Assembly: GCA_964247055.1 (NCBI GenBank)
Contig: OZ176051.1
Location: 13,454,001-13,518,000, forward strand
Reading direction: 5' to 3'
Origin: Paragordius varius
Lineage: Eukaryota; Animalia; Nematomorpha
Length of the DNA: 64,000 nt
Below are positions 8,246-61,480 of the stretch, piece by piece; the first letter of the stretch is position 1; the number at the start of each line of letters is the position of its first letter. The notes beneath the pieces were generated by a model. The model did not search any database and was not told the origin of the DNA. It saw nothing but the letters and a program-made list of their open reading frames with translations. The translations under genes and the position numbers were made by a program.

Positions 8246-9276
8246 TTTTAAGATTAAAAAGTAGCTATTTTTATTTATATTGTAAAAGGGAAATTCCTTT
8301 AAAATTAAAATGATAATAAAAAATAAACTAAGTCATGGGCGACGCAAATGCTCGGTATGCCACTGCTTTGCGGTCCGGATTTACAACTCATTCAAAAACC
8401 AGGTTCCGAATTATATATTTATAAATTTGTAAATACTAACGAACAATTTATTTGTTGTCGATTGGATAGATTTATCCAGAAATTTTTTAAAAAAAAATCA
8501 ATTTTATTGTGATTGTGAGGATATTTTTGCGAATTATCGGGCATCACATAATGTCGCTGAAAGCCTATAGGACACTCTTGATCTAATCGAAAAAAACATG
8601 ATTATTAGCTTAAGCTAATTAGTTTAAGCACTTAATTTATGAGGCTGATCAAAGGGTCCACAATACATTAAAGAAAATCGGGGCAATTTCCACAACTTAT
8701 TTTTTTGAATATATTGTGGGAAATCGGGTAACTTTTATAGATAAAACAAATTATAAGACCTATATAATTGATAATAGTGCTGTTACTTTGTTTTTGTAAC
8801 TGGTTGCTTCAGGTTAATCAATATAGGTACTAAAGAAAGCCTTCAATGTATATTGTTTGATAAAAATATTATAAATAAGCTAAAATATAAACAAATTTTA
8901 TTTCTGTAAAAAGGTTTTGCAAATTTAATCCGACATATTTACACTAATGTTAAGTAAATATAAATATTAAGATATTACGTTATTAGATTTTTTAAGTAAA
9001 ACTCTTTGTTAATTTAGCTCATTCGATTATTTATTTTGCATCATAATAATTATAAAATGAAAATAGATAAGGAAATCTTGATATGCTTTTCACCAAATAT
9101 AAAGCAAATGTAAAGAGCAAATAATAAGCTAATAGTTGTTATTTATTATTTAAATGTATAACACCATAATTATCCAATTACTGATAGTATAAGCCGTTAA
9201 AAATTTTTCTTAAAATAAGTTATTTTTATAAAGAACAAACAAAATTGTTATCGTATATTTACAAACATTCAGATTT

Positions 9277-9346
9277 TGAGGCAAGGCCAAACTAACTTTC
9301 TAAAAAAACAATTAAGCCATCAAATTTGCCGTTTTCGTATAAATAG
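9277..9346 (+). promoter_or_regulatory. Putative cofilin A1 core promoter (GGCAAGGCCAA, TAAGCCAT, CCGTT, TATAAATAG)
   Basis: TATAAATAG at 9338-9346, about 80 bp upstream of the ATG; the same ordered motifs occur upstream of type B. Confidence 0.6.
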
Positions 9347-9423
9347 GAGTGCTTAACGTATGTTAATTTAATTTATTTTTTTTCTCTTTCTCTCTTTCTA
9401 GCCACCTATCTATTATTATTGCT

Positions 9424-9834
9424 ATGGCCACAATCGATCCCAATTGCGGAGTTGTGTACCGAGAATTTTCAACAAGCCTCCTCTATAAATATGTCATCTT
9501 TGGGATAACACAAAACAAGATTGTAGTTATGAAAAAAGCGGCTCAAACAGCCAAATACGAAGATTTTTTACAAGATTTGAATGCTCTCAGTAAGGATTGT
9601 AGATATGCCGTTATGAATTTCGATTATGTTGATCCTAATACTAAACAAGCTAGTCGGAAAATAGTTTACTTTCTGTGGAGTCCAGACGCTGCTGACGTCC
9701 GCACAAAAATCGCGTATACTTCAAGTAATGATGCTCTTAAAAAATCTTTTACTGGAATATTTTTACATATTCAAGCCAGTTCGATAAATGACGTTCAATA
9801 TAAAACGGTATTGGATCAAATATTAAAGAAATGA
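9424..9834 (+). CDS. ADF/cofilin family actin-depolymerizing protein, type A copy 1 (136 aa, intronless)
   Basis: ADF-H motifs YKYVIF, YEDFL, DCRYAVMNFDY, RKIVYFLWSPD, KIAYTSSNDALKK, IQAS; open frame; TATA box upstream and AATAAA downstream. Confidence 0.95.
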   Translation: MATIDPNCGVVYREFSTSLLYKYVIFGITQNKIVVMKKAAQTAKYEDFLQDLNALSKDCRYAVMNFDYVDPNTKQASRKIVYFLWSPDAADVRTKIAYTSSNDALKKSFTGIFLHIQASSINDVQYKTVLDQILKK

Positions 9835-9957
9835 AAAGAAATATCTGGTTATTACTTAGTCCCTTCAATATAAATAGTTCACCTACCTTCATATCCAACG
9901 CAATTTATTTATTATTGTAAATATATATTATATGCGTATTTTGTTCAGTTGTAAATC

Positions 9958-9963
9958 AATAAA
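9958..9963 (+). terminator. Putative polyadenylation signal of cofilin A1
   Basis: AATAAA within AATCAATAAAT...ATTTGTTAA, a context also conserved downstream of type B (41131-41136). Confidence 0.5.
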
Positions 9964-11056
9964 TCAATTTGTTAAATTTATAGATACATTGAAAATTGTA
10001 CACACAAAACGTAAAAAAGTAGACCTAAATTGATTGTATCGATAATTCATATGCAAATAGGATTCATTAAAGGAGTAAAATATTTGTACTTAAATGGAAT
10101 TATCAATAATAAGAAAAAATATTTTTTAAATAAATTTTAATTTATTTATGTAGAAATTCTTGAAAAACAAATTTATTTATAAAAGAACCATTTTAAGATG
10201 TTGTTACTTATAACTTAGCGTAAAAATAACGAAATAAAAGAATTCTCTAATTAACTATCATTACAATAAAAAATGATAGAGACATATTTTTAAAACTTCA
10301 CATTTTGGGTTAATGTGTTGATTGTTAATATACACTCTCTCATATGATTAATGTTTGTGATAAAATAATGTAAAAAACAGCCTAAAAATATAATTGTTTT
10401 GAGAAAAAATATTTGTTTTTAATTTTTACATTTTGTTTGTATAATTTTAATTATTCCTGTTAGGTGATTTTATAGCGTTGAATGCGTATACGATAATATA
10501 AATTGTTCAGATATTAATTTATCACAAAATCAAATAGTTTTTCTAAAGTGCTACATTTAAAAAATTTTTAAAAGGCATTAAACAAGCACTCGCTTTAAAA
10601 TTATTCGAAAATCTGATGGTGGAACGCTTCTGCAGTTATCTGCCTCCTATTATAACTCTGTTAAAAATATCTATGGGCACATCATGTTTATTAAATGATT
10701 TACCATCACCTCAAATTTATTTTTAAATACAAATTTGCCCTTAACAAACACCCTAAAAATAGATTATCTTAAAATAACCCTAATTATGAAATATTTTTTT
10801 ATGACATAGTTCGATATTTTTCTATATTACGAAACTTATAAAAAAAAGAGTAAAAATAATTTTAAAGATTCAAACCCAATTATAATCCGACCGAGAAAAA
10901 ACACATATTATATATATCCATATCATTTTTATTTTAATATATAATTTCAATATTTAAGTATGGTTATATTTGTAAAAAATAACAAAATTAATTTGAAATT
11001 TTTTTGACACTAAGTAACAAATTTATCTCAGAATAACTTGGAAAAGTATATAACAT

Positions 11057-11311
11057 CTAAACCAAGAGTGTCCGAAACAAATGGCTTGGCGGGCCGCATT
11101 TTCATATCGAACGAGGGTCTGCATTCGCATATTTTAAGAACTCTCTTAAGTTCTGTAAAAACTATTTATTATAACTATTATGCTAGTTCATCGCCGAAAT
11201 TCAAAAAACATAATCGGAAAATTTGTTTAAATATTTTATTTAACATTGTATTTAAGATATCTCACGGGTCGCCGAGGTATTTTGCATGCCGCATGTGTAT
11301 TGGACCCCCGT
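11057..11311 (+). mobile_element. Degenerate hAT-type MITE
   Basis: 5' CAAGAGTGTCCGAAAC and 3' TTGGACCCCCG resemble CAGGGGTGTCCAA/TTGGACACCCCTG ends; GCGGGCCGCA and GCCGCATG subterminal motifs. Confidence 0.55.
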
Positions 11312-12269
11312 AACAAGTTTAAACAATTTGGAGAAATGGTAAATCTCTTTTTATGTACTTATTTTATAGGCTTTTAATATTAACATCAAAAGTAGGGTTA
11401 ATGCAGGTTTCGTATTTTATTTATCATAAAATATTTTACTTAAGATAACATTTTTGGATCTTTCTGACTTGGTTCATAAAAATTAATTATAAGGCTTATT
11501 TATGTAGAGTAATGTTTAGAAATAAAAAGTTTAATTTTACTGCGTCCGAAATCGGTAGGTATAATGAACAAATATCCTTATGTAATCAGTATCATAATGC
11601 TGTTGCGAGGATTTAAGAAAGTTATTCACCCTTTTGTGGCAAGTGCTCTATAGAAAATAGCAATACGCATAATAATTTTTTTTTGAACCTAAATGCTTCC
11701 TTCCAAATATTTTAACTAAAATTTTAAAAAATTAAATACGGGTTCCAAAAATACCAAATTTTTTCGATCTTCTAAAATGGGCTAGTTCTCTAAAAATAAA
11801 CGTGAAACTGCGTTAATGCAACAAAAATATTTTAACATAAAATTAATGAGGCTGAATATTTATATCGCTCCAAAATTTGATTTAAATATTTGTTCGTCTT
11901 CAAATTTATATAAATTTTTTCTAAAAAAATCCCATAAACAATCGAACCTTTAAATTCTAAAGCGACAAAAATGTTCAGCATTATTATATATAAGTGTTTT
12001 AGATAATATTAGTTTTTATACCCTTATCATACCTAAAGTATGAAGTACAATATTTTTAATTTATTCAAAATTTAGCATACTAAAATTTTGGAATCTCGGC
12101 ATTATTGGTTTTAGGCTAGATTATTTTGTAGGAGTGAAAAAATTGATTTTCAGGGCTTACATTTCAAAATTATTTTTAAATTATTGTTTTGCTTAATTGA
12201 TTTTTTTAAATGAAGATTTAGCTTTCACAAATATATTAAAAAAAATGTGCGCTAGTTTTTTGCCATTTT

Positions 12270-12520
12270 CTGATATGAATTACTTATCACAAAAGTGTAA
12301 ATAACTTTCTTAAGTTACTCGTAAGGTTCATAGCCAAAAGGATCATGATAATCCTGATACATTTTCCAATCCGAATATATATATATATATATATATATAT
12401 TTCCTAGAATATATTTTTTTACAATGTGTTTGTAAACTAAAGAGACTAAATATTTGATATCGGCATATTGCAATAACTTATAATAATTTGATTTTCCCTC
12501 ATAATATAACATGGTATTCT
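12270..12520 (-). pseudogene. Possible Merlin/IS1595-type transposase remnant
   Basis: IVKKYILGN...IYSDWKMYQDYHDPFGYEPYE resembles the IKKYI.PGS.IYSD.W..Y..L...GYEH motif; interrupted by a (TA)n run. Confidence 0.4.
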
Positions 12521-14593
12521 TTTAATAGGATAATATCCTCAAAATGAGGGCAAAATGTTGAGTCAGGATCTTTAGTTCGACGTCTTCACGTAAAAATTTA
12601 ATAAATATGCATATCAATTTTTAAACAAACAGTATGAATTCCAATTTGTACCCATAGTGGTAATTAAATATGATATAAACATTCATTTAATATTAAAGAA
12701 TCGTATTAATTATCATGAAAGTATCAATTAACACATCATTTGACAGTATGCGGATTAATGTTGGGCATTGGTTATAGAGTAGCGTATGGGTAAAAACAAA
12801 AATGGTATTATCACCCTATCTTACAAATTAAATTTTATTTAATTAGGGAATTCGTTCTATCTCATTCGCTTCTGTATTATTTATTGGCCAAACAATAATG
12901 TGATTGGAACAACATCAATGTGCACACTGTAAATACATAAATGGAAAGTTTTTTGAAAATTATCGGAAAAGGATGTTTTCTAAAGAGTGATCTATTGCAG
13001 ATATGAAATCGAATTCTATATGTGAACATAACCTGATAGGTAATTTAGTAAAAGAATACTATAGAGAGCAAATCTGGTTTAAGCCAACCCATCTATATGA
13101 ACATTAATTGTATTAAATTTTATGATAAAAAAAATTATTGATATTGTATTTCACTCCAATTATTAACCATATATAACTTAATAAAATTTGAAAACGTGAT
13201 AAATTTTATATTTAGAGTAAAAACAAAATTTATTAGTTCCTTAAATTCTTTCCAAAATTGTTCAGCCTAGTTTTTAAAGGGATTATTTGTTAAAATCGGA
13301 CCTAACCAGAACATAAATTTTTTAAACGTTATTAGAAAGGATATTACCCATTTCAAAAGCATATAATATACAATTCTATGTAACGTAAAGTGACAATAAT
13401 AACACACACTTACTATAACAATTTTAGAAGTGTAAGCTCTTATAAAATACATTTTTATTAATTCTATTAAACGGTAATAAACTAGGATACAAAGGAATGT
13501 TTTTCGATATACTGACGATATTCTTATTTATAAATATCATAAGAGGGTTTGCACATTTTCATATATATTTATGCAAAATATTTTTAAATAGTAGCATATA
13601 TTCATTGAGAAGGAATTTAAACTATTCACCCAATGCTTGAGACCTCGTAAAAGGTATTTACTTTTCTCTCGATTATTGATATAAAAAAGGTTATACAAAA
13701 ACGGCCACAAATTAATTTAGTAATTTAAAGCTGTGAAATTTATTCCAAACTAAAAATTATAATAAAGTAATTACAACTTTCGACAATTTTTACAATTATC
13801 TTTAAAGAAGCGATGTATCCTGTTATAATCGGAAACCAAATTGAATTTTGAAAAACACTCATCATATTTTTGCCCAGCTATGTTTAGTTAATTACAAAAA
13901 GTTATGTTGGTAAATAATATATATAATAATAATTTGTTTTGGAGATGGATTTATTATTGATTCTATAGCATATGATTAGCTCTTTCTTTGTATTTTATAT
14001 AATCCGGTCTTTTTATTACAACTATAAATTTACATATAGGCAAATAATTTAAAAATATTATTTAGTCAAGCATTCCTGCCCAAAAAAATAACAGATTAAA
14101 TATCATTTTTTGTGGATTTATGCATAGTTGATTATTTAAAACATAAATTTTTAATTACGATGATAATCTCTGAGTAAAAAAACAAAACTACAAATGAAAT
14201 TAACCGATAATCATATTTTTAATTAAGCATTTTTTCGAAATCCATATATACCGTTATTTTCTGTTTTTCATACAATATCTTACCTTATCATAATTGTAAA
14301 CACTTCGACTGTTGTTTCAGTTTTCCAGTTAATGATATGAGTACAGTTTAAGCATAATGTGCCAGTATTTTTGTATTTTAATTCACTGCTAATATGTGCT
14401 CTTTGATTTGAAATATTTCTTATATAAGATAAATTTTTTACCAATCGCTGTGACTTGATTGAATTTTTTTAATTATTTATAATATTTTTGCTGGTGAAGA
14501 CAGGATTAAGAACTTACGTTTATGAAGGCGACGCGCGCTATAAGTGGTTATGTTTTCAGTTTTCTAGCACTTATTATAAGGAAATTCCACCAT

Positions 14594-14643
14594 ATAGGGT
14601 AAATTTGAATTATTAAAGGGTGAATTTGAACTGTAAATGGTAT
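14594..14643 (-). repeat. 50 bp inverted repeat, right copy (pairs with 8196-8245)
   Basis: ATAGGGTAAATTTGAATTATTAAAGGGTGAATTTGAACTGTAAATGGTAT. Confidence 0.85.
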
Positions 14644-14799
14644 TCAATAAATATCTAAGTGATAAAATTAAATGAAATACAACCAGTTTTTATATCAATT
14701 TATTTTTAAACTTCATGCGGAATGGAAGGCGCGTGAAATATTTGTTAAAAACATTTCAAAATAAGCCTGGCGCTTGGAGAGTAAATGTCAATTTTTTGC

Positions 14800-15815
14800 C
14801 TAGTCAATCAATTATATATATCCATTTTCCATTCAACAAAACGTTTTCCCAGTCCATCGAAACATTTTCCCAATCAATCGTAACGTTTTCCCAGTCAATC
14901 GAAACATTTTCCTTAACAATAAATACATTTTCCTAATCAAAAAAAACGTTTTCCCAGTCAATAAAAACGGTTTAATTTTTGATACAAGATATAAAAATCT
15001 TTCAACCATTATCAGCTTAATATTAAGATATTATTTTTTATAAAAACACAATTATTGAATGAAATTTTTCCAATTATATTACAGTGCACAATCATTAATG
15101 ACTTATTCTTTAAAAGTTATATTTTATGCAATTTGAATTTTTGAGAAAATATTTAATAATTTTTTGTTTTATTGATGGTGCGCATCAATATTCGGGGCTA
15201 AATTATAAAATCTATAGTTTCGGATGTAAAAAGTTTGTCGATATAAATACTGTCTGAAAAGAATATCTAAACAAAAAATATTTTTTAGATAAAAACGAAA
15301 AGGATTTTGACTAAAAAAATTGTATAAATTAGGGTAGAGCTGCAAATGTTTAAAACCCGATTTGAAGTGTTAAATGACCGATTTGAGATGAAAATGGTAT
15401 ATTTTTTAATTTATAATTTCACCCGAAGCTATAGATTTTATAACCCCGATTATAAACGCAAACCGATACATAAAAAGATTATTAAATATTTTCCCAATAT
15501 TTCTCAAAAACCATACAATGCTCATCCAGTTAATAAAATATAACTTGTAAAGAATAAGTCATTAATGATTAAGTATTGGCCAATAAAAAAATTTCATTTT
15601 CAATAATTGTGTTTTTCTAAAAAAAATATCCTAATTAGTGAGCTCTTAATGATTAACAGTTTTTTTATATTTTAATTTGATATTTATCTTTAAAAATGAA
15701 ACCGTTTTTATTATATGGAAAAATGTTTCTAGTGGTAAAACGTTTCGATTGACTGGGAAAATGTTTTGATTGAGTAGGAAAACTATTTTTTTGAGTGGGA
15801 AATGGTATATATTCC
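14800..15815. mobile_element. Foldback element with long TIRs containing 21 bp modules
   Basis: AAACGTTTTCCCAGTCAATCG-type units at 14840-14960 and inverted at 15720-15800; arm homology continues about 14975-15130 versus 15540-15700. A second family member lies at 33375-37735. Confidence 0.75.
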
Positions 15816-17239
15816 TAACCACTATCATTACGATAACACGATTTTAATACACAACAATCCTTATCATACATGCTGTATGCAAAATTAACGATTTTAATAT
15901 ATGGTTATTTTTGTTTTATTTTTAATTCTTGCGGCTTTTTATAATGTGTATTCAGATTTCCTACGTATTTTACCCATTATAAATTTATTTATTTCAAGCA
16001 AAAATTTTTAAAAAATTTGTGTAAAAAACAGAGATTAGAAAAAGTTTAACTTTTGCCTATTCTGCTTAATGTAAAATTTGATATCAAAATTATTAAAATC
16101 ATTGATAGACACTTATGACCCCAGAGTAACACATTTTTACATAAATGGAAATGTGTGCTATAAAATATTTAACATTTATAGTTCAAATATTTTAACTAAA
16201 TTTTACTATTAATTTTATTATTTGATATGTAGATAGAAAAAAATAGCCATCGTTCTAGTTTTAATTCCGTCGGCTTCCGTTACGGAGTATCTGAATTTTT
16301 CTGGATTATTGGTTTTAAACCTGGACCGTGAAAAAATATTTTTTGCATTTTTACCATGCTTGAACATAAGCTAACTTTTCCGTAGCGTTATAGAGATTAG
16401 GAGTGGAATCAATACTGTAAATTTATCATTTAGATAAGGGGTGGCCAATTTTTTCACGCGGGCACGTAAGAATATTAGGTATTAAAAAATTGATTTGTCA
16501 CTTCAACACAAATGGTGCAAATATATATGGTGACTAACACACATACACTATTAAATAATATACGAAAAATATTTGAGTAGTTTTTTAATCATTTTATCAA
16601 AATACATAAATAATGTTGATCGAGAAGACCTCTGGTTGCCACAATCAGTACAATTACTAAAGCATTTACATTATTTCACAATGGATAATTAACTGATCTT
16701 GCGACGGATTTTGGATGAATGGAGTAAAAAATGGATTTGTAGCTCTTAAAGATATTTATAATTTACTAGATTTTATGGATTATGCATACTAGGTTTTAGA
16801 TAATGGACATATACTTTAAGATAGTAAATTCCATCAAATCAAAAAGAGGGTCGGGCTGGGTTTTGAGTTTAATTAAAAGAAATCGGTGTTGACACAGTGA
16901 GCTGGTTAATACAGATGTATGATGGTTATGTCGTGTTGTTTTTTATAGAAAGATTAAGACTTTTTTTACTAAAATATAAATATATTTTACCGAAGAAAAA
17001 TTATTTATATCCACATGTGAAAGATCTAAAATCGCTTCTTGATCTTCCCTTTTGATGCGATATCTCAAAAAAATTGTACACTGCAAATCAATTTAAAAAC
17101 AGAGATTTCTTCTAATTTGAGGTCTAAAATTTCGCTCTCAAAAATGTGTGAATTTAGGTAAGATTGTGATTAAGATCATCATTTGTCCGCATAATTGTGT
17201 TTTTAAGTTTTTTATTGATTCCATAATATTTTTAATTAA

Positions 17240-17785
17240 GCATCGCATATCACAAATGTGGAAAAAATACCATTCGTTAAAATTAATAATAAATAATAAA
17301 TTAATCAAACTACAAACTAAATGTGCCATTTACACTACAGCCATCCGTCCCGTTCTCACATATGCATCTGAATCCTGGCCGATGTCAAAAACAAATGAAT
17401 CCAAACTCATAAACGCTGAATGCAAATTATTGAAAACAATATTATTTGCACACAATCTCTCTAAATTCAATTATACCGAATCCATAAACCCGTACCATAT
17501 ACTCAATCTCAACCCCATCAACAACGTCATCAGAAATCTCCGGTTACAATGGGCTGAACATGTTGAGAGACGGCAAGATACTCACATTCTTAAAACTATG
17601 AAAAATTACTCGATTGAACTACCAGCGAAATCCGGCCGACCCCATACCACATGGCTCAACACAATAACTAAAGACCTCGAATCGCTCAATTTAAACCTAG
17701 AATTAGCCAAATCAAGAGAAGAGTGGAAAAAACGGGTGTACCGTCATTTAATGGCAATCCCCATACAAAATGATGATGATGATCT
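17240..17785 (+). mobile_element. RTE-like LINE, 5'-truncated 3' end with (GAT)n tail
   Basis: IYTTAIRPVLTYASESW, LRLQWAEHVER, GRPHTTWLNTITKDL, SREEWKK; ends in ATGATGATGATGAT at about 17770-17784. Confidence 0.85.
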
Positions 17786-18199
17786 TCTTAACTTTCAAAC
17801 AGCACTTCAAAAGCCTTAGTAAAGCTTTTTTCAAAATTTTTAAATCCTAAAAAGTTTGTTGTTTTTATTAAGATTTCTGATATATTTTGTAAGTTGCAAT
17901 GGAATTTTTATGATTTTTGCTGTTTACAATGTTCTTCTGAGCAAGTTGCTCTTTTAAAAGCTTTTTAGATTTGAGATTAAATTGTATTTTTGATAATTCA
18001 TGTGCAGCATAGTATAATGTATTTGGACATTTGCCTTTTTAGGCAAATTCACTGTAAACTTACAAATAAAACTAGTACACCTATCGATTATATAATATTT
18101 ATTATATTTCGTTTATAGAGGTATTAACTTCTTTAGATAAAAAATGAGAAAAATTATATAAAAAATAAAAACAAAAATAAGACATAAATGACAATATAT

Positions 18200-20130
18200 A
18201 GGTTTATACCAACGAGCAGATAGCACTTATCAATCCTCAAATCTCAAAAAGCAAAGAAATGATCAGCTAAAAAAAAGACTTGCTGTAATGAAATCTAATC
18301 TTGTTACCATCAACCATATCAATAAAACTGTCATTAACCTTACACAGCAACCAAAAAACCTAGTATCGCTTCTAAGCCGCGGACTAAATTTTACACTGAC
18401 CCCAACTATGCTACTAACAGAAACCATTATAACCGAAGATGTAAACAGTATAAGTCAACTACCACAAATTCACAGTGATAAAATAAGAGTTGCCACCACA
18501 AAAATCCTAGAATCCAAATTACCCGCCCCAAAATATACCAAATTAGAAATAAAAGCCCTTAAAGTCATTGGTGAACCCTCAGTTGTAATTCTCCCGGCAG
18601 AAGGTAATGCCGTGGTAATCATGGTCAGCAAAATTTACGCTGAAAAAATGAATGATATAATGCATAATTATAATAAAACTATATTACAATCCAAAAAGAG
18701 GCCACCCAAAAAACACAAATTGGTAGAAAAGCGGTAAAAAAACTAGATTACATAATAATTTTAAAACAGCATGCATACCAAAATTAACTATTTCACCCCG
18801 TATTTATGGGGCTCCTAAAACTCACAAACCAGAAATACCCCTCCGACCATTTGTCGATAATATTAACACACCTACAGACAGGTTTTCTAAACAACTTATA
18901 AAACATCAAAAGCCTTTTGCACAGAATTCCGTCTATTACATACAAAATGGTAAAGAGTTTGTAAAATTACAACAATACGTCATACTAGTCACCTTGGACA
19001 TACAATCCCTTTTCTTAAACATCCCAAGAAATGAATAATATCTATCATCGAAAAGTTGGTCACTCATGGCCTAATCCCGACATTCCATAGTTAGTGAAAA
19101 TATGCAATGATTATTTTTGTACAAAAAGTAATACTATTTACAAAATACTGGTACCCCATGACATCCAGTCTCTCCCCAATACCAGCTATTCTATACATAA
19201 AATTTTTCGAAAAACTTCTGTTTGAATCTTCGACACTATCCCGTAGATGCTAATATCGATATGTAAATGATATATTCATGATGTTGCAACACGGAGGAGA
19301 AACACTATATACCTTTCTAGATTTTTTTAATGACATAAATTCCAATATACATTTCACCATGGAATGCAATCCCCAAACTCCCTACATATCAACTAAAAAT
19401 CAAGAATGGCATAATCCAACATACTGTCTTTAAAAAACACACACTAACTTATAATTAAATGCAAATTCCCATCATCATCCAGCCATAAATACTCAGCTTT
19501 AAATACTCACATATACAGAGCTAATACTCTTTGTGATTAATAAAATTTAAAATAACGGTTATTCAGTTAACCTTTTTAATAAATTAAAGAAACATAAATC
19601 AACTGAAACTACAAAGTATTCAATCTCTTTTATCGTTCTACCATACATCAAGTTGTCACAACCATAATTGGATTTTCGACAAAAATAAAGTAAAAGCTAT
19701 GAAGACTCTTTTAATCTCTCATATCATGTTTAATAACGAAATTTTAAAAAAAAGCCTTCTAGGAGTTTGTGAAATTACATGTTCCTATAATGAACACCAA
19801 TATTAACCCGATGGAATGAACATGACCAATACATTCGTGCCTGCAAATCCTCTTTTGGATTAGCATAGCATATAATCCACAATGATCACCACATTATAAC
19901 CCGTAAAGCAATCACAAACATTGCTCAATACAAAAGCGCCGGATACGTGAGTCTATCGAGATCAAGAAGCATAATCCTAGACATAATCGTGAGACGGCCT
20001 GGTCATATCGTCAATTTGGAACCCTTCTTCAATACAACATTTATAAAGGATACTATTGTTGGTTTTATAAATTATAATACACATCAAACCATATATATTA
20101 CAAATCAATTACCTCCATCAAAACAATTAT
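18200..20130 (+). mobile_element. Penelope-like element (RT plus GIY-YIG), decayed
   Basis: VINLT...LLSRGLNF, VILPAEGNAVVIM, YGAPKTHKPEIPLRP, GTPM, RYVNDIF, NIHFTME, and a GVCEITCS GIY-YIG-like remnant; many stops and frameshifts. Confidence 0.85.
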
Positions 20131-20329
20131 AACAATACTAGCGTAAATTTCGTGCGGCTACGCAGCCCGGAGGAAGTCCTTCCGACTTCTGAGGGGGCTT
20201 TTTGAAAAAAGGGACATTAAATGATCCATATATGGGGTTATTTCGAAACATTATTTAATAGCTATGATCTCTAAAATCTTCAAAACGGTGCATTCATACC
20301 AATATATTGTTGAGTGGTGCTATACTATA

Positions 20330-21099
20330 TTTTTTTACCTTTTTATGGGTAATATTTAAAGCCTTTATTGAACTCCTACCGCTTCTTAAGTTTTTGGAAA
20401 ATTAGCTCCAAAGCCACGGCATTTTTGTATGGCATCTCAGTTTTACACCTGAAGACCCCTACCGAGAGGCCTATATGAAAAAAGCGCTAAGTAAAATGTT
20501 TTGACTCTATAGGAAAAATATTTGGAATAATCTTTGACACCATCGTCTCATGGGATATTCGAAAAAATACCTTAACACTAAATAATCGTTATATGGTGGC
20601 ATATTTTTAAGGCATAAAGCCCTTAAATTAAAGGCGAATAAAAAAGCCTGACCTTAATTTTTATTTAGTTACGGGTAATATTAATTATTGAGCTCATATG
20701 GCATAAGTTTTAAATTGGTTCCAAAACAACGCAATTTCTATATAGTGGCACAGTTTTTTGCGAGTAGCTTGTTATCCAGAGGTAGGTATAAAAAAGCGTC
20801 GGGCAAAATTTTTGTCTTTATATGGAAAATCTCTGTTATAATGTCCATATGTTGCTATAAGTTCTTGGATATATTGATTCAAAACCAAAAATTGTTCTAT
20901 GGCTTAGGGCGTAAAATTTTTCTTAGCGACACATTGAAATAACCCCCTATACTAAAATATTTAAGAGGTAAAAAATATTTAAGGCCCTTATTGAACTCAC
21001 ATAGTCTCATAGGTTTCTGAAATTTGGCTCCAAAAGGATGCTGTATCGATATAGTGACGAATTTTTATGCGGGTAGCCCCCTATATATTTAACCGATAA
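20330..21099. repeat. Satellite-like tandem array, ~165 bp monomers (left part)
   Basis: Recurring TTTTACGGGTAATATTT...ATATGGTGGC...AAAAAAGCG...AAAATTTTTG at about 165/330 bp spacing. Confidence 0.7.
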
Positions 21100-23091
21100 C
21101 ACTGTGCAACAAATTTTATCCTTTTCTTTTAGACCAGAGTGAAAATTACGACATCTTATAGAGAATTTTTTTCTGAAAATAATGATATAATTAATATTTT
21201 CCTAGCACATTTTCACGAGCCGCTAAAAGGTTTCAAAAATCCAAAAACCATCAAAAATGCCTGTTTTTGTAACCCAATAACTTCTTGAATTATATAGCTT
21301 ATTATATTTTTTTTGGGGGATATTACAAATTATATTTTAGAATTCATGTAACATTTTAAAATTTTTTAAAGTCTCTACTACTTTTTGATTTATTTGGAAA
21401 AAACGAAACTTAGCTCCAAAAAAAATAGCGTTTCAAAACAATGAAAAATTAAGAGACATACTGGCATCATTTGATTGACAGCTTTTCATTATACATTACT
21501 AAAATAATAAAATTTAATTGCTTTTTTATAAATATGAAAAATAGTATATATATTTAACACTTGGATACAACACACTCATTTTAGTCCTTCGATTCAAATT
21601 GGGGTAGTTGGATACCCCAGGCCTTTTTAAAAACAAATACTTTAAAAAGTATGGAAATATTCAAAACCATGGCAAAATTTTGCACTTATATAACATTTAT
21701 AAACCGAAATATATAAAAAATTTTCAAAAATACTTGATATTACTTATTTTAAGCTAAACCCAAAGGTAAAAATTTCGTCAACGTGACATGTGTCAAATTG
21801 TAAAATTAAAAAATAATACAAAATAAACCGCTTTTCTATTTCAATCAATGTTAGATGTAAATTATATAAAAAATTAGCTTTAGTTTTACCTTTAAAATCA
21901 AATGAAGACGATATTTTGCAAAAATTTTGTAAAATAAAAATGGCGTCGAAGTAGTTTGAGATGGAACTTTTTTTTCAAAACAAAATTTTATCAAGATATT
22001 TTGGCATATTTATATAATTTTTATCAAGATAGAAGCATAAATTTAAATTGGGACCGTTTCCTTCTGTATTTTCTAAAAATATTAATTTAAATTTAGTCTG
22101 GGGTATTTAGATACCCCAATTTGAATCGAAGTGTTAATGTTATAATAATAAATTTAATAAAATGATAATATTTTTAAATTTATTAATGTTAATGGATAAT
22201 AAACTCTGTGTTTGAATTAATATTATATGATTTTTAGTAATATTTCAATTATGTTATTATATATTTTTGTTATTATTTTAAAGTAAATTTATTTATAAAC
22301 TACTAAGGTTTTAAAAAATTTAATACAGAAATGATTTCAAAATTATAAATATATTAAAATATTTTTTAATTAAGACACAATATACGAATATATTTATTAT
22401 GAAAGAAAAAAACAAATAAATGCCTTTTTTGCTCTGTTAGTTCAACATTTCAGTTTATATTTATTTGCATGTTTATATTTTTATTTGTTGAAAAAAACTT
22501 TCGTATATTAAAAAACAAAATATCATGATTCATATAATCACGTACAATACATAATAAATAAATTTGCATGTTTAAAAGTATTTCTTATTTATAAATAATA
22601 TATATCAAATTAATATTATATATTTATTATTTTATTAATTATACTATTATACTAATTTATTCCTAAAATTAATATTTACATTTTTTAATTAAACATGAAA
22701 TTTTTCCATTTTGTTATGTATAAAAAATGGTATGGTGCCTGCACGTCTTTTAATTTTTCATTGTTTTGAAACGCTATTTTTTTTGGAGCTAAGTTTCGTT
22801 TTTTCTAAATAAATCAAAAAGTAGTAGAGACTTTTAAAAATTTTAAAATGTTACATGAATTTTAAAATATAATTTGTAATATCCTCCAAAAAATAAATAA
22901 TAAGCTACAAAATTCAAAAAATTATAGGGTTACAAAAACAGGCATTTTTGATGGTTTTTGAATTTTTAAAACCTTTTAGCGGCTCGCGAAAAAGTGCTAG
23001 GAAAATATTAAATATATCATTATTTTCAGAAAAAAATTCTCTATAAGATGTGGTAATTTTCACTCTGGTCTAAAAATCGTGTTGCACAGTG
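21100..23091. mobile_element. Non-autonomous Chapaev3/CMC-like DNA transposon with ~370 bp TIRs
   Basis: Termini CACTGTGCAAC...GTTGCACAGTG flanked by a 3 bp TAA duplication; near-perfect inverted arms 21100-21472 versus 22730-23091. Confidence 0.8.
21585..22133. mobile_element. piggyBac-like MITE nested in the Chapaev3-like element
   Basis: Inverted ends CTTCGATTCAAATTGGGGTA...TACCCCAATTTGAATCGAAGTG followed by TTAA; the left target reads TTAG (degenerate). Confidence 0.45.
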
Positions 23092-23720
23092 TAATTTAAA
23101 AAATCCGCTCGACTTTTGTTTTTGCCTTTTTACGGGTAATATTTCAGGCTCTTATAAAACTTATATGGCTTGATAAGTTTTCTGAAAATCAACTTTTAAA
23201 CAACGCAAGTTTGATATGGTGGTGCAGTTGTAGGCGGGTAGCTCCCTACCCAGAGGCTGATACAAAAAAGCGCTTGATAAAAATTTTTGCCTTTCGGAGA
23301 ATAACTGAAATCATCATTAATTCCATATGCTCTCATTAGTTTTTGGAAAAATTGCCTCAAAATTAAAAAGTCATTTTATGGTGGCGCATTTTTTAGGGCA
23401 TAAAGGGCCAATTTAACCGCTAATTTTAAAAAACCGGTTCGACTTAAATTTTTGCCTTTTTACGGGTAATATTTTAGCAGCTATTGAAATATGACCTGAT
23501 ATGTTTTCTGAAATTTAGCCCCAAAGGCACGTCATTTTCATATGGCGGGTCAGTTTTTAGCGGGTACCTCCTTACCATCAGGTATCATCAAAGAAACGTA
23601 CGACTAAAATTTTTGCCTTTTAACAGGAAATAACTGGAATTCTTATTGAATTTTACGGTCTCATACCTTGGGCGAAAAATAGATTCGAAAAATTTTTGTG
23701 GACCTAATTTTTTCGAAAAA
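23092..23720. repeat. Satellite-like tandem array, ~165 bp monomers (right part)
   Basis: Same monomers and orientation as 20330-21099, starting near 23128, 23291, 23458 and 23618. Confidence 0.7.
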
Positions 23721-26700
23721 AATTGCATTTTACGGGGGAGCGGGTAAAAAGAGGGCCTTAATTGAAAAAGCGAGACGACTGTGTTCAGGGCAATCGAAAA
23801 TAAGTAGAGAAAAATCATATTGGAAATCGAATGGTCCAACAAGTTTTCCGGAATGTCTCAAAGACACGATTTTTGTGGACTTGTGTTTTCAAAAAAACCG
23901 TTTTTTACACTGGATGGGCTCGAACTGGGGACCTAATTCAAAAAAAGGGCGAAGCTATTGTGGGGCATTCATTAATGTTTAAATTTTTTCGACATTTGAA
24001 TTTGAATGGGTCTACCGGTTTTCCGGAAACAGATCACAAGCCAGCATATTCCATTTTTATAAATATATAGATAACCTTTATATTGTCATTTATTTATTTA
24101 ATATTTATATCATTTTTTATCTGAAGTTTATACCACTATAAACGAAATATATATATATTATTATATCATCTCGTTCTTAAGCCCTAGAATTTATTTTATA
24201 AAATTTAAAGATGCAAATCAATTCTCTCAATTATTCTAAGTACTCTATCATTATTAAAAAAAATAATCTTCATCCCATTCATTTCTTTGACAAATTTAGC
24301 ATTTTTCTGGCTTAAATCTTTAATTCTATAAATATATGAGTTTGAAGGATACCGTTTTTTTGCTAAATTTAACCTATTTTCTAAAGAAAATCACAAATAT
24401 ATTAATAAAATAATAAATAACTAATTAAATATAAAATTGTCGCTAACAAGTAAGTGTCAAATCAATAAAAATAAATTAATAAAATTAAATTATAATTTTG
24501 TGGAGAAAATATTTTCTGCAAATATATTTTTTGCATTTTAATTCAGGCGGTAAGTCGACCGTTTGGCGACCCCTATGTTATACCGTTCTCACCGTGCTTC
24601 AAAATGTCAAAAAACATGTTTTACTAAAATTTTCTTATTTTTCAGACAAAATATACATTTTTTGTGAAAAATGTTTTTTGATGTCTATATTTAACATATA
24701 CTTTATAAATCATATCGCGCAATATCTGCATTTTAGCGCTTAAACTAGCCAATTTTAGAAGTCTCTCAGAATTTGAATTGGGGACCATATCAAAAATAAA
24801 AATATTTACTTTGATTATTTACGATCTATTTTAGTGATATATTTGAATAAAACATTTAGCTTCCGCCAAGAAATTTTTAGCAAAAGTGGTTTTAGAAATT
24901 CTGTAACATCTATCAAAATGGATATAATCAGGAAAATTTTGTCTGCATTGTGTGTTTAAAGTCAAATAATATTTTTTGCAGCATAATAGTAAATTTTTAT
25001 TCAAATTTGACGCCTACTCCGATTTTCTAGTGTTTCTGCTTTCGTTGTAGTTTTGAGTCGCATTTTGCAACATAAATATGGTGTAATTTCCTTAGAATAA
25101 GTGATAGAAAATCGAAAAAATAACCACTTATAGTGCGCGTCGACACCTTTCATAAACCTAGTAATCTTGTTTTGACTAGCTTTTCTCAGATTCCTATCAT
25201 TGAAAATATTATCAATCCCAATAAAAAAATTTCGATCAAGTCACAGCGATTGGTAAAAAATTTATCTTATATAAGAAACATTCAAATCAAAGAGCACATA
25301 TTAGCAGTGAATTAAAATAAAAAATACTGGCACATTATGCTTACAACTGTACTCATATCATTAACTGGGAAACTGAAACAACAGTCGAAGTGTTTACAAT
25401 TAAGATAGGGTAAGATAATGTATGAAAAACAGAAAATAACGGTATATATGGATTTCGAAAAAAGCCTAATTAGAAATATAATTATCGGTTAATTTATTTG
25501 TAGTTTTGTTTTTTTACTTCAGAGATTATCATCATAATTAAAAATTTATGTTTTTATTGTTATTTTTTTAGGCAGGAATGCTTGACTAAATAATATTTTT
25601 AAATTATTTGCCTATATGTAAATTTATAGATGTTGTAATAAAAAGACCGGATATATAAAATACAAGAAAGAACTAAACATATGCTTTAGAGTCAATAATA
25701 AATCCATCTCCAAAACAAATTATTATATATATTATTTAACAACATAACTTAATTAACCAAACATAGCTGGGCAAAAATATGATGAGTGTTTTATAAAATT
25801 TAATATTGATTGCCGATCATAACAGGCTACATCGCTTTTTTTAATACAGATAATTGTAACAATTGTCGAAAGTTGTAATTATTTTAATATAATTTTTAGT
25901 TTGGAATAAATTTCACAGTTTTAAATTATTAAATTAATTTGTGGCCGTTTTTGTATAACCTTTTTTTATATCAATAATCGAGATAAAAGCAAATACCTGT
26001 TTCGACGGCCCAAGCATTGGTGAATAGTTAAATTCCTTCTCAATGAATATATCTGATTAATATTTTGCATCAATATAAATGTGATTCCAAACCCTCTTAT
26101 GATAATAATAAATAAGAATATCGCCAGTATATCGAAAAACATCCCTTTGTATCCTAGTTTATTACAAAAAATGTATTTTTTAAGAGCTTATACTTCTAAT
26201 TTGTTATAGTAAGTGTTTGTTATTATTGTCACTTTACGTTACATAGAATTGTATATTATATGCTTTTGAAACGATGGGTAATATTTTTTCTAATAATGAT
26301 TAAAACAATTTATGTTCTGGATCCGAATGCAGACCCTCGTTCGATATGAAAATGCGGCCCGCCAAACCATTTGTTTCGGACACCCTTGGTTTAGATGTTA
26401 TATACTTTTTCAACTTATTCTGAGATAAATTTGTTACTTAGTGTCAAAAAAATTACAAATTAATTTTGTTATTTTTTACAAATATGACCATACTTAAATC
26501 TTGAAATTATAAATTAAAATAAAAATGATATATATATATATGTATTTTTTCTAGGTCGGATTATAATTGGGTGTTTTGAATCTTTAAAATTATTTTTACT
26601 CTTTTTTTTATTTTTTATAAGTTTCGTAATATAGAAAAATATCGAACTCTGTCACAAATAAATATTTCATAATTAGGGTTATTCTAAGATAATCTATTTT

Positions 26701-27626
26701 TAGGGTGTTTGTTAAGGGCAAATTTGTATTTAAAAATAAATTTGATGTGATGGTGTATCATTTAATAAACATGATGTGCCCATAGATATTTTTTACAGAG
26801 TTATAATAGGAGGCAGATAACTGCAGAAGCGTTCCACCATCAGATTTTCGAATTATTTTGGAGCCAGTGCTTATTTAATGCTTTTTGAAAATTTTTAAAT
26901 GTAGCAGTTTTGAAAAACTATTTGATTTTGTGATAAATTAAAATCTGAACAATTTATATTCTCGTATACGCATTTAACGCTATAAAATCACCTAACAGGA
27001 ATAATTAAAATTATACAAACAAATTGTAAAAACTAAAAACAAATATTTTTTCTCAAAACAATTATATTTTTAGGCTGTTTTTTACATTATTTTATCACAA
27101 ACATTAATCATATGAGCGAGTGTATATTAACAATCAACACATCTACATATTTCGTAACCCATAATGTGAAGTTTTAAAAATATATCTCTGTATCATTTTT
27201 TATTGTAATGATAGTTAATTAGAGAATTCTAAATAAACAACATCTTAAAATGGTTATCTTTTATAAATAATTGTTTTTAAATAATTGTTTTTAAATAACT
27301 TCTACATAAATAAATTAAAATTTATTTAAAAAATACAATTTTTTCTTATTATTGATAATTCCATTTAAGTTCAAATATTTTACTCCTTTAATAAATCCTA
27401 TTTGCATATGAATTATCGATACAATCAATTTCGGTCTACTTTTTTACGTTTTGTGTGTACAATTTTCAATGCATCTATAAATTTAACAAATTATTAATTT
27501 ATTGATGGACAACTGAACAAAATACGCATATAATATATATTTACAATAATAAATAAATTGCGTTGGATATGAAGGTAGGTGAACTATTTATATTGAAGGG
27601 ACTAAGTAATAACCAGATATTTCTTT

Positions 27627-28037
27627 TCATTTCTTTAATATTTGATCCAATACCGTTTTATATTGAACGTCATTTATCGAACTGGCTTGAATATGTAAAA
27701 ATATTCCAGTAAAAGATTTTTTAAGAGCATCATTACTTGAAGTATACGCGATTTTTGTGCGGACGTCAGCAGCGTCTGGACTCCACAGAAAGTAAACTAT
27801 TTTCCGACTAGCTTGTTTAGTATTAGGATCAACATAATCGAAATTCATAACGGCATATCTACAATCCTTACTGAGAGCAGTCAAATCTTGTAAAAAATCT
27901 TCGTATTTGGCTGTTTGAGCCGCTTTTTTCATAACTACAATCTTGTTTTGTGTTATCCCAAAGATGACATATTTATAGAGGAGGCTTGTTGAAAATTCTC
28001 GGTACACAACTCCGCAATTGGGATCGATTGTGGCCAT
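27627..28037 (-). CDS. ADF/cofilin family protein, type A copy 2 (136 aa)
   Basis: Same ADF-H motifs as A1; differs from A1 at one nucleotide (N53T). Confidence 0.95.
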   Translation of the reverse strand: MATIDPNCGVVYREFSTSLLYKYVIFGITQNKIVVMKKAAQTAKYEDFLQDLTALSKDCRYAVMNFDYVDPNTKQASRKIVYFLWSPDAADVRTKIAYTSSNDALKKSFTGIFLHIQASSINDVQYKTVLDQILKK

Positions 28038-28116
28038 AGCAATAATAATAGATAAGTGGCTAGAAAGAGAGAAAGAGAGAAAAAAAATAAATAAAATTAA
28101 TATACGTTAACCACTC

Positions 28117-28185
28117 CTATTTATACAAAAACGGCAAATTTGATGGCTTAATTGTTTTTCTAGTAAAGTTAGTTTGGCCTTTGTA
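28117..28185 (-). promoter_or_regulatory. Putative cofilin A2 core promoter
   Basis: TATAAATAG on the minus strand at 28117-28125, with TAAGCCAT and GGCCAA upstream. Confidence 0.55.
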
Positions 28186-28726
28186 CTGCCTCAAAATTTG
28201 AATCTTTGTAAATATACGATAACAATTTTGTTTGTTCTTTTTTGTAAATTAAAAATAACTTATTTTTAGAAAATTTTTTAACGGCTATATACTATCAGAA
28301 ATTATATAATTATGGTGTTATATATTTTAATAATAAATAACAACTATTAGCTAAATTTGTTCTTAAAAGCATAGCATCTCAGATATCCTATCTCTAAACC
28401 TGTATACAATCAAATAGGGCTATTTTTATTTTATGGTTATAAAAATGTAAAATAGATAATGGATTGAACTAAATTAACAAAGAGTTTTACTTAAAAAGAA
28501 TTTAACTACCGTATTATTTTAGGATTATATTAACATTGGTGTAAATATGTTGATTTAAATATGCAAAACCTTTTTACAGAATAAAATTTGTCAATATTTT
28601 AGCTTATTCATATTTTTATCAAAAATAAAAAAATATACATTTAAGGCTTTCCCTAATACCTATATTTAAATTTAGCCTAAAACAATCAGTTACAAAAACA
28701 AAGTTTTAACAGCACTATTATCAATT

Positions 28727-29643
28727 TATCATTTTTTTGTCTTTGCAATTCCTATTCTTCTTTTAATGTCTGGGGTGCTGTTGTTCGTTGTATTTATAAG
28801 ACTGCCTAGGTAAGTGTATTGGGACACTACTTCTATTTGTTGGTTGTGAAAAGATAGGTTGTTATAATGGTTATGAGCGTTTATAGTCATGATTTTAGTT
28901 TTTTTGAAATTGATCGTCAGTAATTTTTGACATTCGTTTGAGAATTCAGTTAAAAGTTTTTTCAGGTTGTCCACTGAGTTTGACAGCAGGTGTCATCAGC
29001 ATAATGGAGTGATGATATAATATTGCCGGCAATGCTTATACCATTAGTTTTATCTATGTTCCGTAATACACTTTCTATGCAGACGTTAAAGAGAGTGGGT
29101 GAGAGGACACAACCTTGTCTTAGACCGTTGTTCATTTGTGATAAAATATAATAAAGTATGGACATCACACGACATCAAACTAAAAACAAAAATCTGTTTA
29201 GTTAAAGCCCTAATATTTCCTAGCATGCTATATGCATCAGAAAGCTGGACAATAAAAAAGGCAGACGAAAAATACATTAACGCCTTCGAAATCTGGTGCT
29301 GGCGGAAGGCACTTCAAATCACTTGGAAAGATAAAGTAAAAAACACTGTAATCCTTGAAAAAATAAACCCCGAGATACACTTGATTGGCATGTGCCTCAA
29401 AATGAAATTATCTTACTTTGGTCACATTACCAGAGCTAATGACTTGGAATTCCAACTAATGACAGGCAAGGTTGGAGGATCCAGGAAACGTGGACGCTGC
29501 AAGATGCGCTGGATTGAAAACCTAACCAAAGAAACCAATCTCTCTTTACAACAGTTAACATCACTCACTCACAATCGAATAAACTGGAGAAAATACACCT
29601 TCGAAAAAGCAATAAATCGACAACGATCTTTGCTACAATAATA
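28727..29643 (+). mobile_element. RTE LINE insertion with 5' inversion and 10 bp TSD
   Basis: TSD ATTATCAATT at 28717-28726 and 29644-29653. Minus-strand RT piece (QGCVLSP, HYADD, IKRRIGIAK) spans 28727 to about 29137; the plus-strand continuation (IKYNKVWTSHDI...RINW) spans about 29139-29643; short TAA tail. The empty site is visible in arm 1. Confidence 0.9.
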
Positions 29644-29904
29644 ATTATCAATTATATAGTTTTATAATTTGTTTTATCTATAGAAGTCCCCGATTTTCTT
29701 TAATGTTTTGTGGACCCGCCTTTGATCAGCCTCATAAATTAAGCGCTTAAACTAAATATCTTAGGCTGATAATCAAGTTTTTTGCGATTAGATTAAGAGT
29801 GTTCAAAACGGGCTTTCAGCGACATTATGTGATGCCCGAGATTCGCAATAATATCATCTCAATCACAATAAAATTGATTTTTCTTTAACAAATTTTCTTT
29901 GGAA

Positions 29905-31330
29905 CTCAATTTGTCTTAACGGATATGAAGGCTTGTGAATTTTAGGATTAGCGTAGAATTTAGGACATTTTGAATGGGGGAATATTTTTTATGTATTATC
30001 GGTGTTTAGTCATCATGTTTTTAATAACTTCGTTATTTGGTCCACAGTTTGAGTAGGGTTTTGATTTAATCGAGTATTGAGTCTAAGCATTTCTTATACG
30101 ATTTTTCGAAATCAGTTGTATTCAAAGCTACTAGGGAGTTGCCTTTGTCCGCTTTGGCAAGCATGAGGTCTTAGTATGTTAGCGTTTTATAACTTTAATG
30201 TCTTCTTTGTTATTGTTGGGTTTAACATGTGTGCGTTTTAACGTTTTGTATAAATCGTTTCTAGTTTGGTCATCATTCTGGTCCAAAACGTCTTCAAATA
30301 TTGTTACGAATTGTTTGGTATTGACTATTACTGGTGAATGTTTCGGTCCCTTGTTAAGCAAATCCATCTCGTACAGAGAAAAAGATGTTGAGGATAGGTT
30401 AACGAAATTTTGTAGGTGTTTTCCGGTATGATGTGTTTAGGGTTGTGCATTTGACTGCTTTTTCAAAAAAGTCCGTTCAGACCTGGTCAGACCATGGTCT
30501 AAATACCATGCGATATTGGATTGTGAAAATAATGTTCGAACGACACTTGCGTTCCACAATAATGTCATGTTTTTTCTTAAAAGTTTATATTTATACATTT
30601 TTTTATATTTACAATATTTTCAATCAAATTTAATCAAGAATTTTGTTTTGAAATAAATTTTGCCACATTCTTGTGGCCTGAATCTTCAATTTCGTAACTT
30701 TTATTGGATATTTCAAATTTAATTTTACCTAGTTTGTTTTACACTTTCTTTCATCATTGAAGTATCCAATTATAAAATGTTTTTACATTTTACTGGTTCA
30801 TATATATAAAATAATCCATATTTTGCAAAATGCTTGATTGTTTTTCCAAATAACTGGATATGCTAAATGCTAATGTTATAAGGATGCATGTTTAACAATT
30901 TTATATTGTTAAATAAGCATATTTAAATATTTAATTTATATTTTTTAAAAAGTATATTAAAAAGCAATAAAATCTTACTATCTCTCTTCCAAAAAAAATT
31001 TACCAGCAATTTTTTAAAAAACAGCTGTTATTTTAAATGACCATGGTCAAAAAATAAATAGTCACTGACCGGGTCATGACTTGGTCAGCACAACTCTAGA
31101 TGTGTTTTTATTATTATTTCTAAATAGTTCTTTTAGCTTCTCGTGTCTTTTTTCTGTTTCACTTAATTTTATGATATCTTTATGTTTACGTTTTATTTCT
31201 ATAGGGCTCAAATTTTCTAAGCATACTTTAAGTTTTGATAGCAAATTTTTCTCCTGTATGCTTTTAGTTTTATTGGTTAATGTTTTTAACAAGTCGCCCA
31301 CGCATCCATTATAGCATAAGCCAAAAAATT
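29905..31330 (-). mobile_element. Penelope-like element fragment (N-terminal region and start of RT), interrupted
   Basis: NFVNLSSTSFSLYEMDLLNKGPK and LAKADKGNSLVALN motifs; upstream Lys/Glu-rich ORF 31074-31301; non-coding block about 30480-31090 in between. Confidence 0.7.
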
Positions 31331-32122
31331 ATCCAACAGGTTTATTTTGAAAGCTTGTTTCATCCATTCAAATAGTATCCACCTTATCAACATAATAGAG
31401 GAGAGAAAAGAACAATATCACCAAAGACTACTTAAAAGGAACATATTTTAATTTATTTACCACTCCAAAAAAACAATAAAGAGAACCATATGGACATCAC
31501 ACTTTACATTTTTTGTTTTTATCATAATTTATAAATATTTTTTTCAAATTTTGTTTTAATTATATTTTATCATTAATATTTTCTTTTGTTTTTAATTATT
31601 CCATTGAAAAAAATACCACCATATATCGAAAATTGGATATAATCCCTTTAACAAATAAATTTTACGAGAATTCAAATCATTATTTTAACATAAAATATTC
31701 GTTCTCATTGACAGTATGAAATTGATTTTTGCGTTAGGAATATGTTTAGGAGAGATGAATAACTTTGGAATCACTTTGTATGTTAAACATTTTCGGAGAA
31801 ACCGCAAATCTTCAAACTTTACGAGCTTTTTATCATAAAAAATGTAATTTTGACTCATAATTCACATTTAAAATGCTCTTCAAAACTAACCGAGGATAAA
31901 ACAGAAAGTAAAGATGTCGATATAAAAATATATTTAGTAAATTACTGGTATAAATTGTGTGGGTGACGACAAAGGGTTTCAAATAAGATTTGTATTAACA
32001 TTTTGTAAATGATTGTGATCTGGAATAAAATTTAACCTAATTATAGTATGTGTGAAAATACGGATGCGATGACATAAATCACAGCAAATTTTTTTTAATA
32101 TGACACAGATAAAGGAGAGTTT

Positions 32123-32529
32123 TCACAACTGACCTAATACCGTTTTGTATTTACCGTCGTTTGATGAGGTAGCTTAAATACTCAAAGATAAACCAATAAA
32201 GGATTTTAACAGCGCATCATTGTTTGAAATGTACGCCCTTTTTTAAGAAGATAAGAAGTGTCCGGACACCAAAGATACTAAACTATTTTTCGGTTAATTT
32301 AATCGTATTAAAGTTAACATAATCGAAACTTACTATTGCATATCTGCAAACGCTAATGGTTGGAACATCAGTCAAATCTTGGAGAAAATCATCGTGTGTA
32401 GCTGTATTACTTGCTTTTTTTCATCACAAAAATCCTGTTTTGTGTTAGGCCAAAAAGAACATATTTATAGAGGTGGCTTACGAAAAATTCTCAATACACT
32501 GATTTACACTTTGAATCAATTGTGGTCAT
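32123..32529 (-). pseudogene. ADF/cofilin pseudogene, type C copy 1
   Basis: Hand translation: MTTIDSKCKSVY*EFFVSHLYKYVLFGLTQNRIFVMKK / frameshift / ASNTATHDDFLQDLTDVPTISVCRYAIVSFDYV / frameshift / KIV*YLWCPDTS...TVLGQL*. Not in the ORF track. Confidence 0.9.
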
Positions 32530-40562: not shown

Positions 40563-40621
40563 AGGGACTGTAAAAGACCTTTATTTTAAAATTTCTATTA
40601 TTATTCTATATAATATTAAAT

Positions 40622-61421: not shown

Positions 61422-61480
61422 GAGGGACTGTAAAAGACCTTTATTTCAAAATTTTATTCTTATTCTATATAATATTAAAT

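Follow-up and report, generated by a model that had tools for sequence, protein, structure and literature searches.

Probable ectopic gene conversion between inverted ADF/cofilin genes of the nematomorph Paragordius varius

Introduction

The window analysed here, a 64,000-nt stretch of the genome of the nematomorph Paragordius varius (GenBank assembly GCA_964247055.1, 110.5 Mb in 44 contigs; contig OZ176051.1, G000:C2:13454001-13518000), carries seven copies of a small intronless gene of the actin-regulating ADF/cofilin family, which we refer to as A1, A2, A3, B1, B2, C1 and C2. A1 and A2 are located tail to tail in the two arms of a decayed inverted duplication. While the arms have accumulated substitutions, indels and arm-specific insertions, the two genes are almost the same at the nucleotide level, and the locus therefore raises a simple question: what has kept them alike while the DNA on either side diverged? 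An initial reading of the window from its letters, in the following the sequence-only reading, had proposed repeated ectopic conversion over a tract of about 540 bp.

Our analysis of the assembled sequence leads to a similar view. We find that the best explanation is probably ectopic (interlocus) gene conversion, over a tract of 371-570 nt, involving inverted paralogs that lie 17.5 kb from each other, and put its probability at roughly three in four. In the following, we describe the tract and the contrast with its flanks, weigh this explanation against its competitors, and compare the locus with known cases of concerted evolution.

A homogenised tract in decayed arms

The architecture of the locus was obtained from a BLAST self-comparison of the window, and identities from a sliding-window comparison and a three-way alignment of the arms. 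The inverted arms are separated by a 10.5-kb spacer and can be aligned over about 4-6 kb at 84-96% identity, interrupted by indels and arm-specific insertions (Table 1). A tandem duplication of 19.7 kb has copied the whole right arm and thereby produced A3. Since A2 equals A3 and their arms are essentially identical, A1 compares alike with both.

Within the coding sequence (CDS), A1 and A2 differ at one of 411 bases (9581, A/C), so that codon 53 reads AAT (Asn) in A1 and ACT (Thr) in A2, whereas not a single difference is found over 84 synonymous sites (dS 0). The three-way alignment thus agrees with the sequence-only reading, which had also noted that the first 110 nt or so of the 3' untranslated region (UTR) are identical; in fact, identity extends over 118 nt after the stop codon. 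These form the end of a difference-free core of 371 nt (9582-9952). In its maximal extent, the tract (9383-9952) comprises the full CDS together with about 40 nt before it and 118 nt after it; the first differences outside are met at 9382 to the left and 9953/9954 to the right. Immediately next to the tract, the flanks are less alike than the CDS, with 4.5-4.9% substitutions as well as indels. Across all flanking segments, substitutions range from 4.46 to 16% and indel events from 3 to 28 per segment, as the earlier description of the flanks had implied. The arms contain no other long identity island by sliding identity.

Outside the three arms, the upstream and downstream flanks are single-copy, which means that true duplicates are being compared and not independent insertions of a repeat. 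On the same ground we rejected the idea that 8766-9239 is an independent copy of a long interspersed nuclear element (LINE), which would have voided its divergence of 16-22%. In this upstream single-copy DNA (8776-9239 versus 28231-28726), BLAST identity is 78%, while the downstream flank differs by just 4.5%. Because homology continues beyond the tract, in arms that have decayed, the duplication is older than the tract.

The two large length differences between the arms had been read as a 2.2-kb deletion and a LINE insertion. The latter holds: the A2 and A3 arms, but not the A1 arm, have about 960 extra nt that include a reverse-transcriptase fragment (RVT_1, E 1.8e-9, scored on the twin copy at 49826-50029), whereas the open reading frames (ORFs) that follow it gave no match in a Pfam search, in which only the reverse-transcriptase motif fragment matched. 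The size difference attributed to a deletion is real, but the extra A1 segment (11131-13305) contains dispersed repeats, and so an insertion in the A1 arm is probably the better description than a loss from the A2 arm.

Statistical support for excess identity

The excess of identity in the tract was tested in several ways. In a GENECONV-style permutation of the difference positions (20,000 permutations, using our own script and not the GENECONV program), no permuted set contained a difference-free run as long as the observed one (371 nt), nor a run with at most one difference as long as the observed 546 nt (P < 5e-5, all sites). With the non-synonymous sites removed, such that only silent differences were permuted, P was 5e-5 to 2e-3. 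A change-point model with two rates was favoured over a single rate (2*dlnL = 44); its best tract is 9407-9952, and the support intervals cover 9383-9443 at the start and 9916-9952 at the end. Likewise, a chi-square comparison of the tract with the near flanks yielded P 6e-6. With an abrupt step in identity on both sides that is significant at silent sites, the tract of about 540 bp proposed earlier is borne out, and its edges and excess of identity can be seen directly in the alignment.

Different classes of sites contribute unequally to this result. Among the 159 non-coding nt of the tract, 8.6-8.8 events would be expected and at most one is seen (P about 0.0015-0.0018). Synonymous sites alone are suggestive only, and their support for conversion is modest: 3.4-4.1 synonymous differences are expected at the flank rate, and none is observed (P 0.017-0.034).

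Alternative explanations

The alternatives depend largely on how the tract relates to the transcript. The TATA-type box at 9338-9345 would place the transcription start at about 9366-9375, just outside the left edge of the tract, while an AATAAA signal lies at 9958-9963, beyond the right edge. The predicted transcript, from about 9370 to about 9985, therefore encloses the maximal tract, which ends about 25-40 nt before the poly(A) site that we predict; 5 events fall within 9953-9986. This transcript-like shape is what one would expect if no conversion had occurred at all, and if purifying selection on the whole transcript (on the protein, on codon choice and on UTR elements), perhaps together with transcription-coupled repair, had held about 550 nt unchanged. 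The small number of synonymous differences expected to begin with also fits such a scenario; with silent sites evolving at one third of the flank rate, about 4 events at such sites would be expected against the one seen. Yet codon bias is weak (effective number of codons 47.5; 30% GC at third codon positions) and the synonymous sites of the older paralogs are saturated (dS 0.8 between A and B, 1.0 between A and the copy on contig 10 described below), which rules out strong codon bias as the reason for dS = 0. The B1/B2 pair, whose flanks differ by about 1.4%, has already acquired two synonymous changes (dS 0.024) and one replacement, and scaling from this pair predicts 11.3 coding differences between A1 and A2, of which one is observed (P 1.5e-4). 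Nor do the UTRs seem to be conserved, given that, among A, B and the contig-10 copy, the UTR-like 5' and 3' segments do not exceed shuffled controls in similarity (z -1.0 to 2.0), and the stretch from the TATA box to the tract, which should be constrained as well, has 4 differences in 40 nt. Together with the silent-site permutation, these observations make selection by itself an improbable explanation. The sequence-only reading had argued that purifying selection does not suffice to remove synonymous differences, and the controls agree; with P about 0.02-0.03 from synonymous sites, however, the argument is less strong than it was presented and needs the UTR and control evidence. Once the UTR-like flanks, the silent-site permutation and the B1/B2 pair are added, the support for conversion is strong.

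A donor other than paralogous DNA would also produce a tract just inside the predicted transcript, namely a reverse-transcribed cofilin mRNA, with cDNA- or RNA-templated repair taking place in the germ line. Every paralog lacks introns, which is unusual among animal cofilins, so that the family itself may have originated as a retrocopy; elements bearing reverse transcriptases are abundant at the locus; and recombination between cDNA and the genome is established in the intron-loss literature (PMC3652778). Against this stand the lack of a diagnostic mark, as both copies are free of introns that could have been lost and the 3' edge of the tract shows neither an A-run nor a poly(A) remnant, and the 25-40 nt at the end of the predicted mRNA, which were not homogenised. 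Furthermore, the transcript ends are predictions and not measurements, and an ordinary DNA-templated tract, confined by the higher identity of the CDS, fits the shape equally well. We consequently give an mRNA donor little chance, even though pairing of the arms and cDNA-mediated conversion leave indistinguishable outcomes where all paralogs are without introns. Finally, the identity might have been created by assembly or polishing, if reads of the three copies had been mixed and the consensus homogenised over their most similar stretch. Within 40 kb there are three near-identical copies, of which A2 and A3 are in tandem units of 99.95% identity, where reads are prone to mis-mapping. But two copy-specific differences persist in the tract (9406 and 9581), the adjoining flanks with 95-96% identity were not merged, the arms are free of any other long identity island, and the assembly, which resolved scattered differences of one base and an insertion of 1.13 kb between the tandem units, does separate near-identical copies. 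Judged from the assembled sequence alone, such an artefact is unlikely, and its chance very slim.

Several points also weigh against ectopic gene conversion as the explanation. Synonymous sites by themselves are marginally significant, and the remaining argument assumes that the UTR-like flanks evolve close to neutrality. Divergence in the flanks is uneven, from 4 to 29% per 100-nt window, so there is no single neutral rate to compare with. The analysis covers one genome, and the classical confirmations, i.e. paralogs that are closer to each other than to their orthologs and polymorphisms shared between them, are missing. Lastly, the tract edges coincide with those of the predicted transcript, as they also would under constraint on the mRNA or with a cDNA donor.

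A possible history of the locus

If ectopic gene conversion is nonetheless accepted as the most probable explanation, the history of the locus may be pictured as follows. An old inverted duplication would have set two intronless ADF/cofilin copies tail to tail, and the arms would then have decayed to 84-96% identity through indels, the repeat-bearing 2.2-kb insertion in one arm and the retrotransposon fragment in the other. At a later time, one copy would have suffered a break and been repaired from the other copy 17.5 kb away, or from A3 at a distance of 37 kb, and this non-reciprocal homologous repair would have copied 371-570 nt and reset their divergence to zero. The partner of A1 may accordingly have been A2 or its tandem twin A3; like the repair mechanism, the direction and the number of rounds, it is something we infer. 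Two substitutions would have followed, at 9406 and, in A1, at 9581: as Thr53 is common to A2, A3, B1, B2 and the contig-10 copy, Asn53 in A1 appears to be derived and to postdate the conversion. The confinement to the gene would be explained by purifying selection, which keeps the CDS the most alike and presumably makes it the best substrate for homology-dependent repair, and by the indel-rich flanks, which would stop heteroduplex extension.

Divergence at the locus comes in tiers, from which relative ages may be read: 16% in the far 5' arms, 4.5-6.7% in the nearer arm flanks, 1.4-2.2% in the right part of the tandem units, 0.35% in the tract and 0.045% in the left 15.7 kb of the tandem units. 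Divergence is significantly greater in the far 5' flank than in the 3' flank (P 2e-14), and on the 3' side it is slightly greater in the far segment than in the near one (P 0.02). This stepped identity of the arms (84%, 93-96% and 99.65%) would fit several rounds of homogenisation in which the tracts became shorter, although rate heterogeneity could contribute. Repeated conversion, as proposed in the sequence-only reading, is suggested by this pattern only.

The tandem units are likewise two-tiered. Their left 15.7 kb differs at 7 positions, whereas from 40028 on, in the part with B1 and B2, 43 events are spread over 3.1 kb (about 1.4%); over the final 0.9 kb, identity is 97.8%. The pattern is suggestive of a second homogenisation on a far larger scale, or of an unequal crossover, at the same locus.

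Comparison with known systems

The palindromes of human and ape Y chromosomes undergo arm-to-arm conversion, which keeps identity above 99.9% along whole arms. The cofilin locus would share with them the intrachromosomal pairing of inverted arms and a non-reciprocal exchange, but its arms are decayed: outside the 570-nt tract, they are 84-96% identical and contain large arm-specific insertions, and only about 0.55 kb around the gene has been homogenised. A parallel is also offered by the Drosophila pairs Hsp70Aa/Ab and Amy-p/Amy-d, palindromic arrangements in which concerted evolution is limited to the CDS and the flanks evolve independently (PMC3924832). Here too, tightly linked mirror-image paralogs combine a homogenised CDS with independent flanks. 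Unlike the Drosophila cases, the cofilin locus is known from one genome, its tracts are separated by 17.5 kb, its genes are convergent, and one partner has been tandem-duplicated. Similarly, near-identical ORFs with diverged flanks have been read as interlocus conversion in the inverted hsp16 modules and in col-12/col-13 of C. elegans (PMC3966223). The cofilin flanks differ from those in that they can still be aligned at 84-96%, which rules out the caveat, raised in the same review, that only the ORF was duplicated. Conversion tracts run from hundreds of bp upwards, between neighbouring paralogs in inverted or direct orientation (PMC3966223), and a tract of 371-570 nt within this range fits the conversion reading. 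Finally, the reverse-transcriptase model of intron loss (PMC3652778) resembles our case in that the tract lies inside the predicted transcript of an intronless gene; as the cofilin tract offers no diagnostic feature, the likeness indicates a possibility only.

The cofilin tract is probably a clean new instance of a well-known process and involves no new mechanism. Its interest lies in the setting, as the genome is that of an animal and very AT-rich, and the cofilin family on which concerted evolution acts is highly divergent and specific to the lineage. It also illustrates that the identity of copies is not usable as the age of their duplication, since A1 and A2 split much earlier than the 0.35% in the tract suggests. 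Moreover, the stepped identity in inverted and tandem duplicates provides a compact natural example, in a little-studied genome, for estimating tract lengths and homology thresholds. If the donor was a cDNA after all, transcript boundaries rather than DNA homology would limit homogenisation in an intronless, possibly retrogene-derived family.

The cofilin family and other features of the locus

A1 belongs to the ADF/cofilin family, as judged from profile and solved-structure matches of its single ADF-H domain. Its ORF matches the Pfam profile Cofilin_ADF (PF00241) with E 1.7e-23, covering profile positions 5-124 of 125, and its best matches in the PDB are cofilins (2i2q, E 4e-24; 1cfy, 1e-22) and actophorin (7e-21). 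By contrast, no relatives came up when A1 was compared by a word-based method with 5.8 billion proteins, from which we conclude that this cofilin family is very divergent. Between A and the older paralogs (B and the contig-10 copy), dN/dS is about 0.2, which suggests that the A-type cofilin is a functional protein. The eighth paralog, outside the window, is found on contig 10 (C10:2616601-2616960, minus strand) as an intact ORF of 128 aa with a shorter N-terminus.

Table 1. Features of the cofilin locus and divergence of aligned arm segments (window positions; segment values are for A1 arm versus A2/A3 arms)
Feature	Position	Strand	Remarks
TATA-type box TATAAATA	9338-9345	+	read from sequence
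AATAAA signal	9958-9963	+	5 nt past right edge of tract; read from sequence
Cofilin A1	9424-9834	+	intronless ORF, 136 aa + stop codon
Cofilin A2	27627-28037	-	sole coding change versus A1 pairs with 9581 (Thr53, not Asn53)
Cofilin A3	47355-47765	-	identical to A2; inside 19.7-kb tandem twin of A2 unit; absent from the sequence-only reading
Cofilin B1	40622-41029	+	paralog in tandem unit U1
Cofilin B2	61481-61888	+	paralog in tandem unit U2
Pseudogene C1	near 32130-32540	-	frameshifts and stop codons; about 71% identity to A
Pseudogene C2	near 52989-53399	-	frameshifts and stop codons; about 71% identity to A
Tract, A1 arm	9383-9952	+	maximal 570 nt, 2 substitutions (9406, 9581); core 9582-9952
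Tract, A2 arm	27509-28078	-	within gapless 593-nt inverted repeat I1, 99%
Tract, A3 arm	47237-47806	-	inverted repeat I2; A2 and A3 arms identical here
Left arm, decayed inverted duplication	8480-14595	+	A1 points inward, genes convergent
Right arm (A2 arm)	25076-29895	-	BLAST self-comparison, sliding identity
A3 arm, tandem copy of right arm	44804-50756	-	BLAST self-comparison, sliding identity
A1-arm-only segment	11131-13305		2175 nt; dispersed repeats, dozens of copies genome-wide; probably an insertion
A2/A3-arm-only segment	28727-29687		about 960 nt with non-LTR (long terminal repeat) reverse-transcriptase fragment
Tandem unit U1	24308-44035	+	carries A2, pseudogene C1, B1
Tandem unit U2	44036-64000	+	carries A3, C2, B2; ends 891 nt past window
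Far 5' segment	8776-9239		substitutions 16%; indel events 12
Near 5' segment	9240-9382		substitutions 4.9%; indel events 3
Tract	9383-9952		substitutions 0.35% (2/570; 95% confidence interval 0.04-1.3%); indel events 0
Near 3' segment	9953-11130		substitutions 4.46%; indel events 12
Far 3' segment	13306-14595		substitutions 6.7%; indel events 28

The GC content of the window is about 27% overall and 23-37% per 2 kb, mostly about 25-28%; this composition and its repeats, which are of an invertebrate type, set it apart from human DNA. Several further repeats were noted along the way. An element of 1130 nt (47958-49087), present in U2 only and located about 190 nt upstream of A3, shows terminal inverted repeats, each some 27 nt long, and a target duplication of 3 nt (TTT), and the matching site in U1 (28226-28231) is empty; by these sequence features, a non-autonomous DNA transposon inserted here very recently. 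The spacer between the large inverted arms contains an inverted repeat of 344 nt (21127-21470 and 22732-23075, 94% complementary, with 1261 nt in between), which could represent a small palindrome or else a transposon whose terminal inverted repeats are long. Finally, two short dispersed repeats, one of about 80 nt (10384-10460) and one of about 200 nt (about 12200-12420), have dozens of copies each in the genome; these are frequently paired at short distance in inverted orientation, much like miniature inverted-repeat transposable elements.

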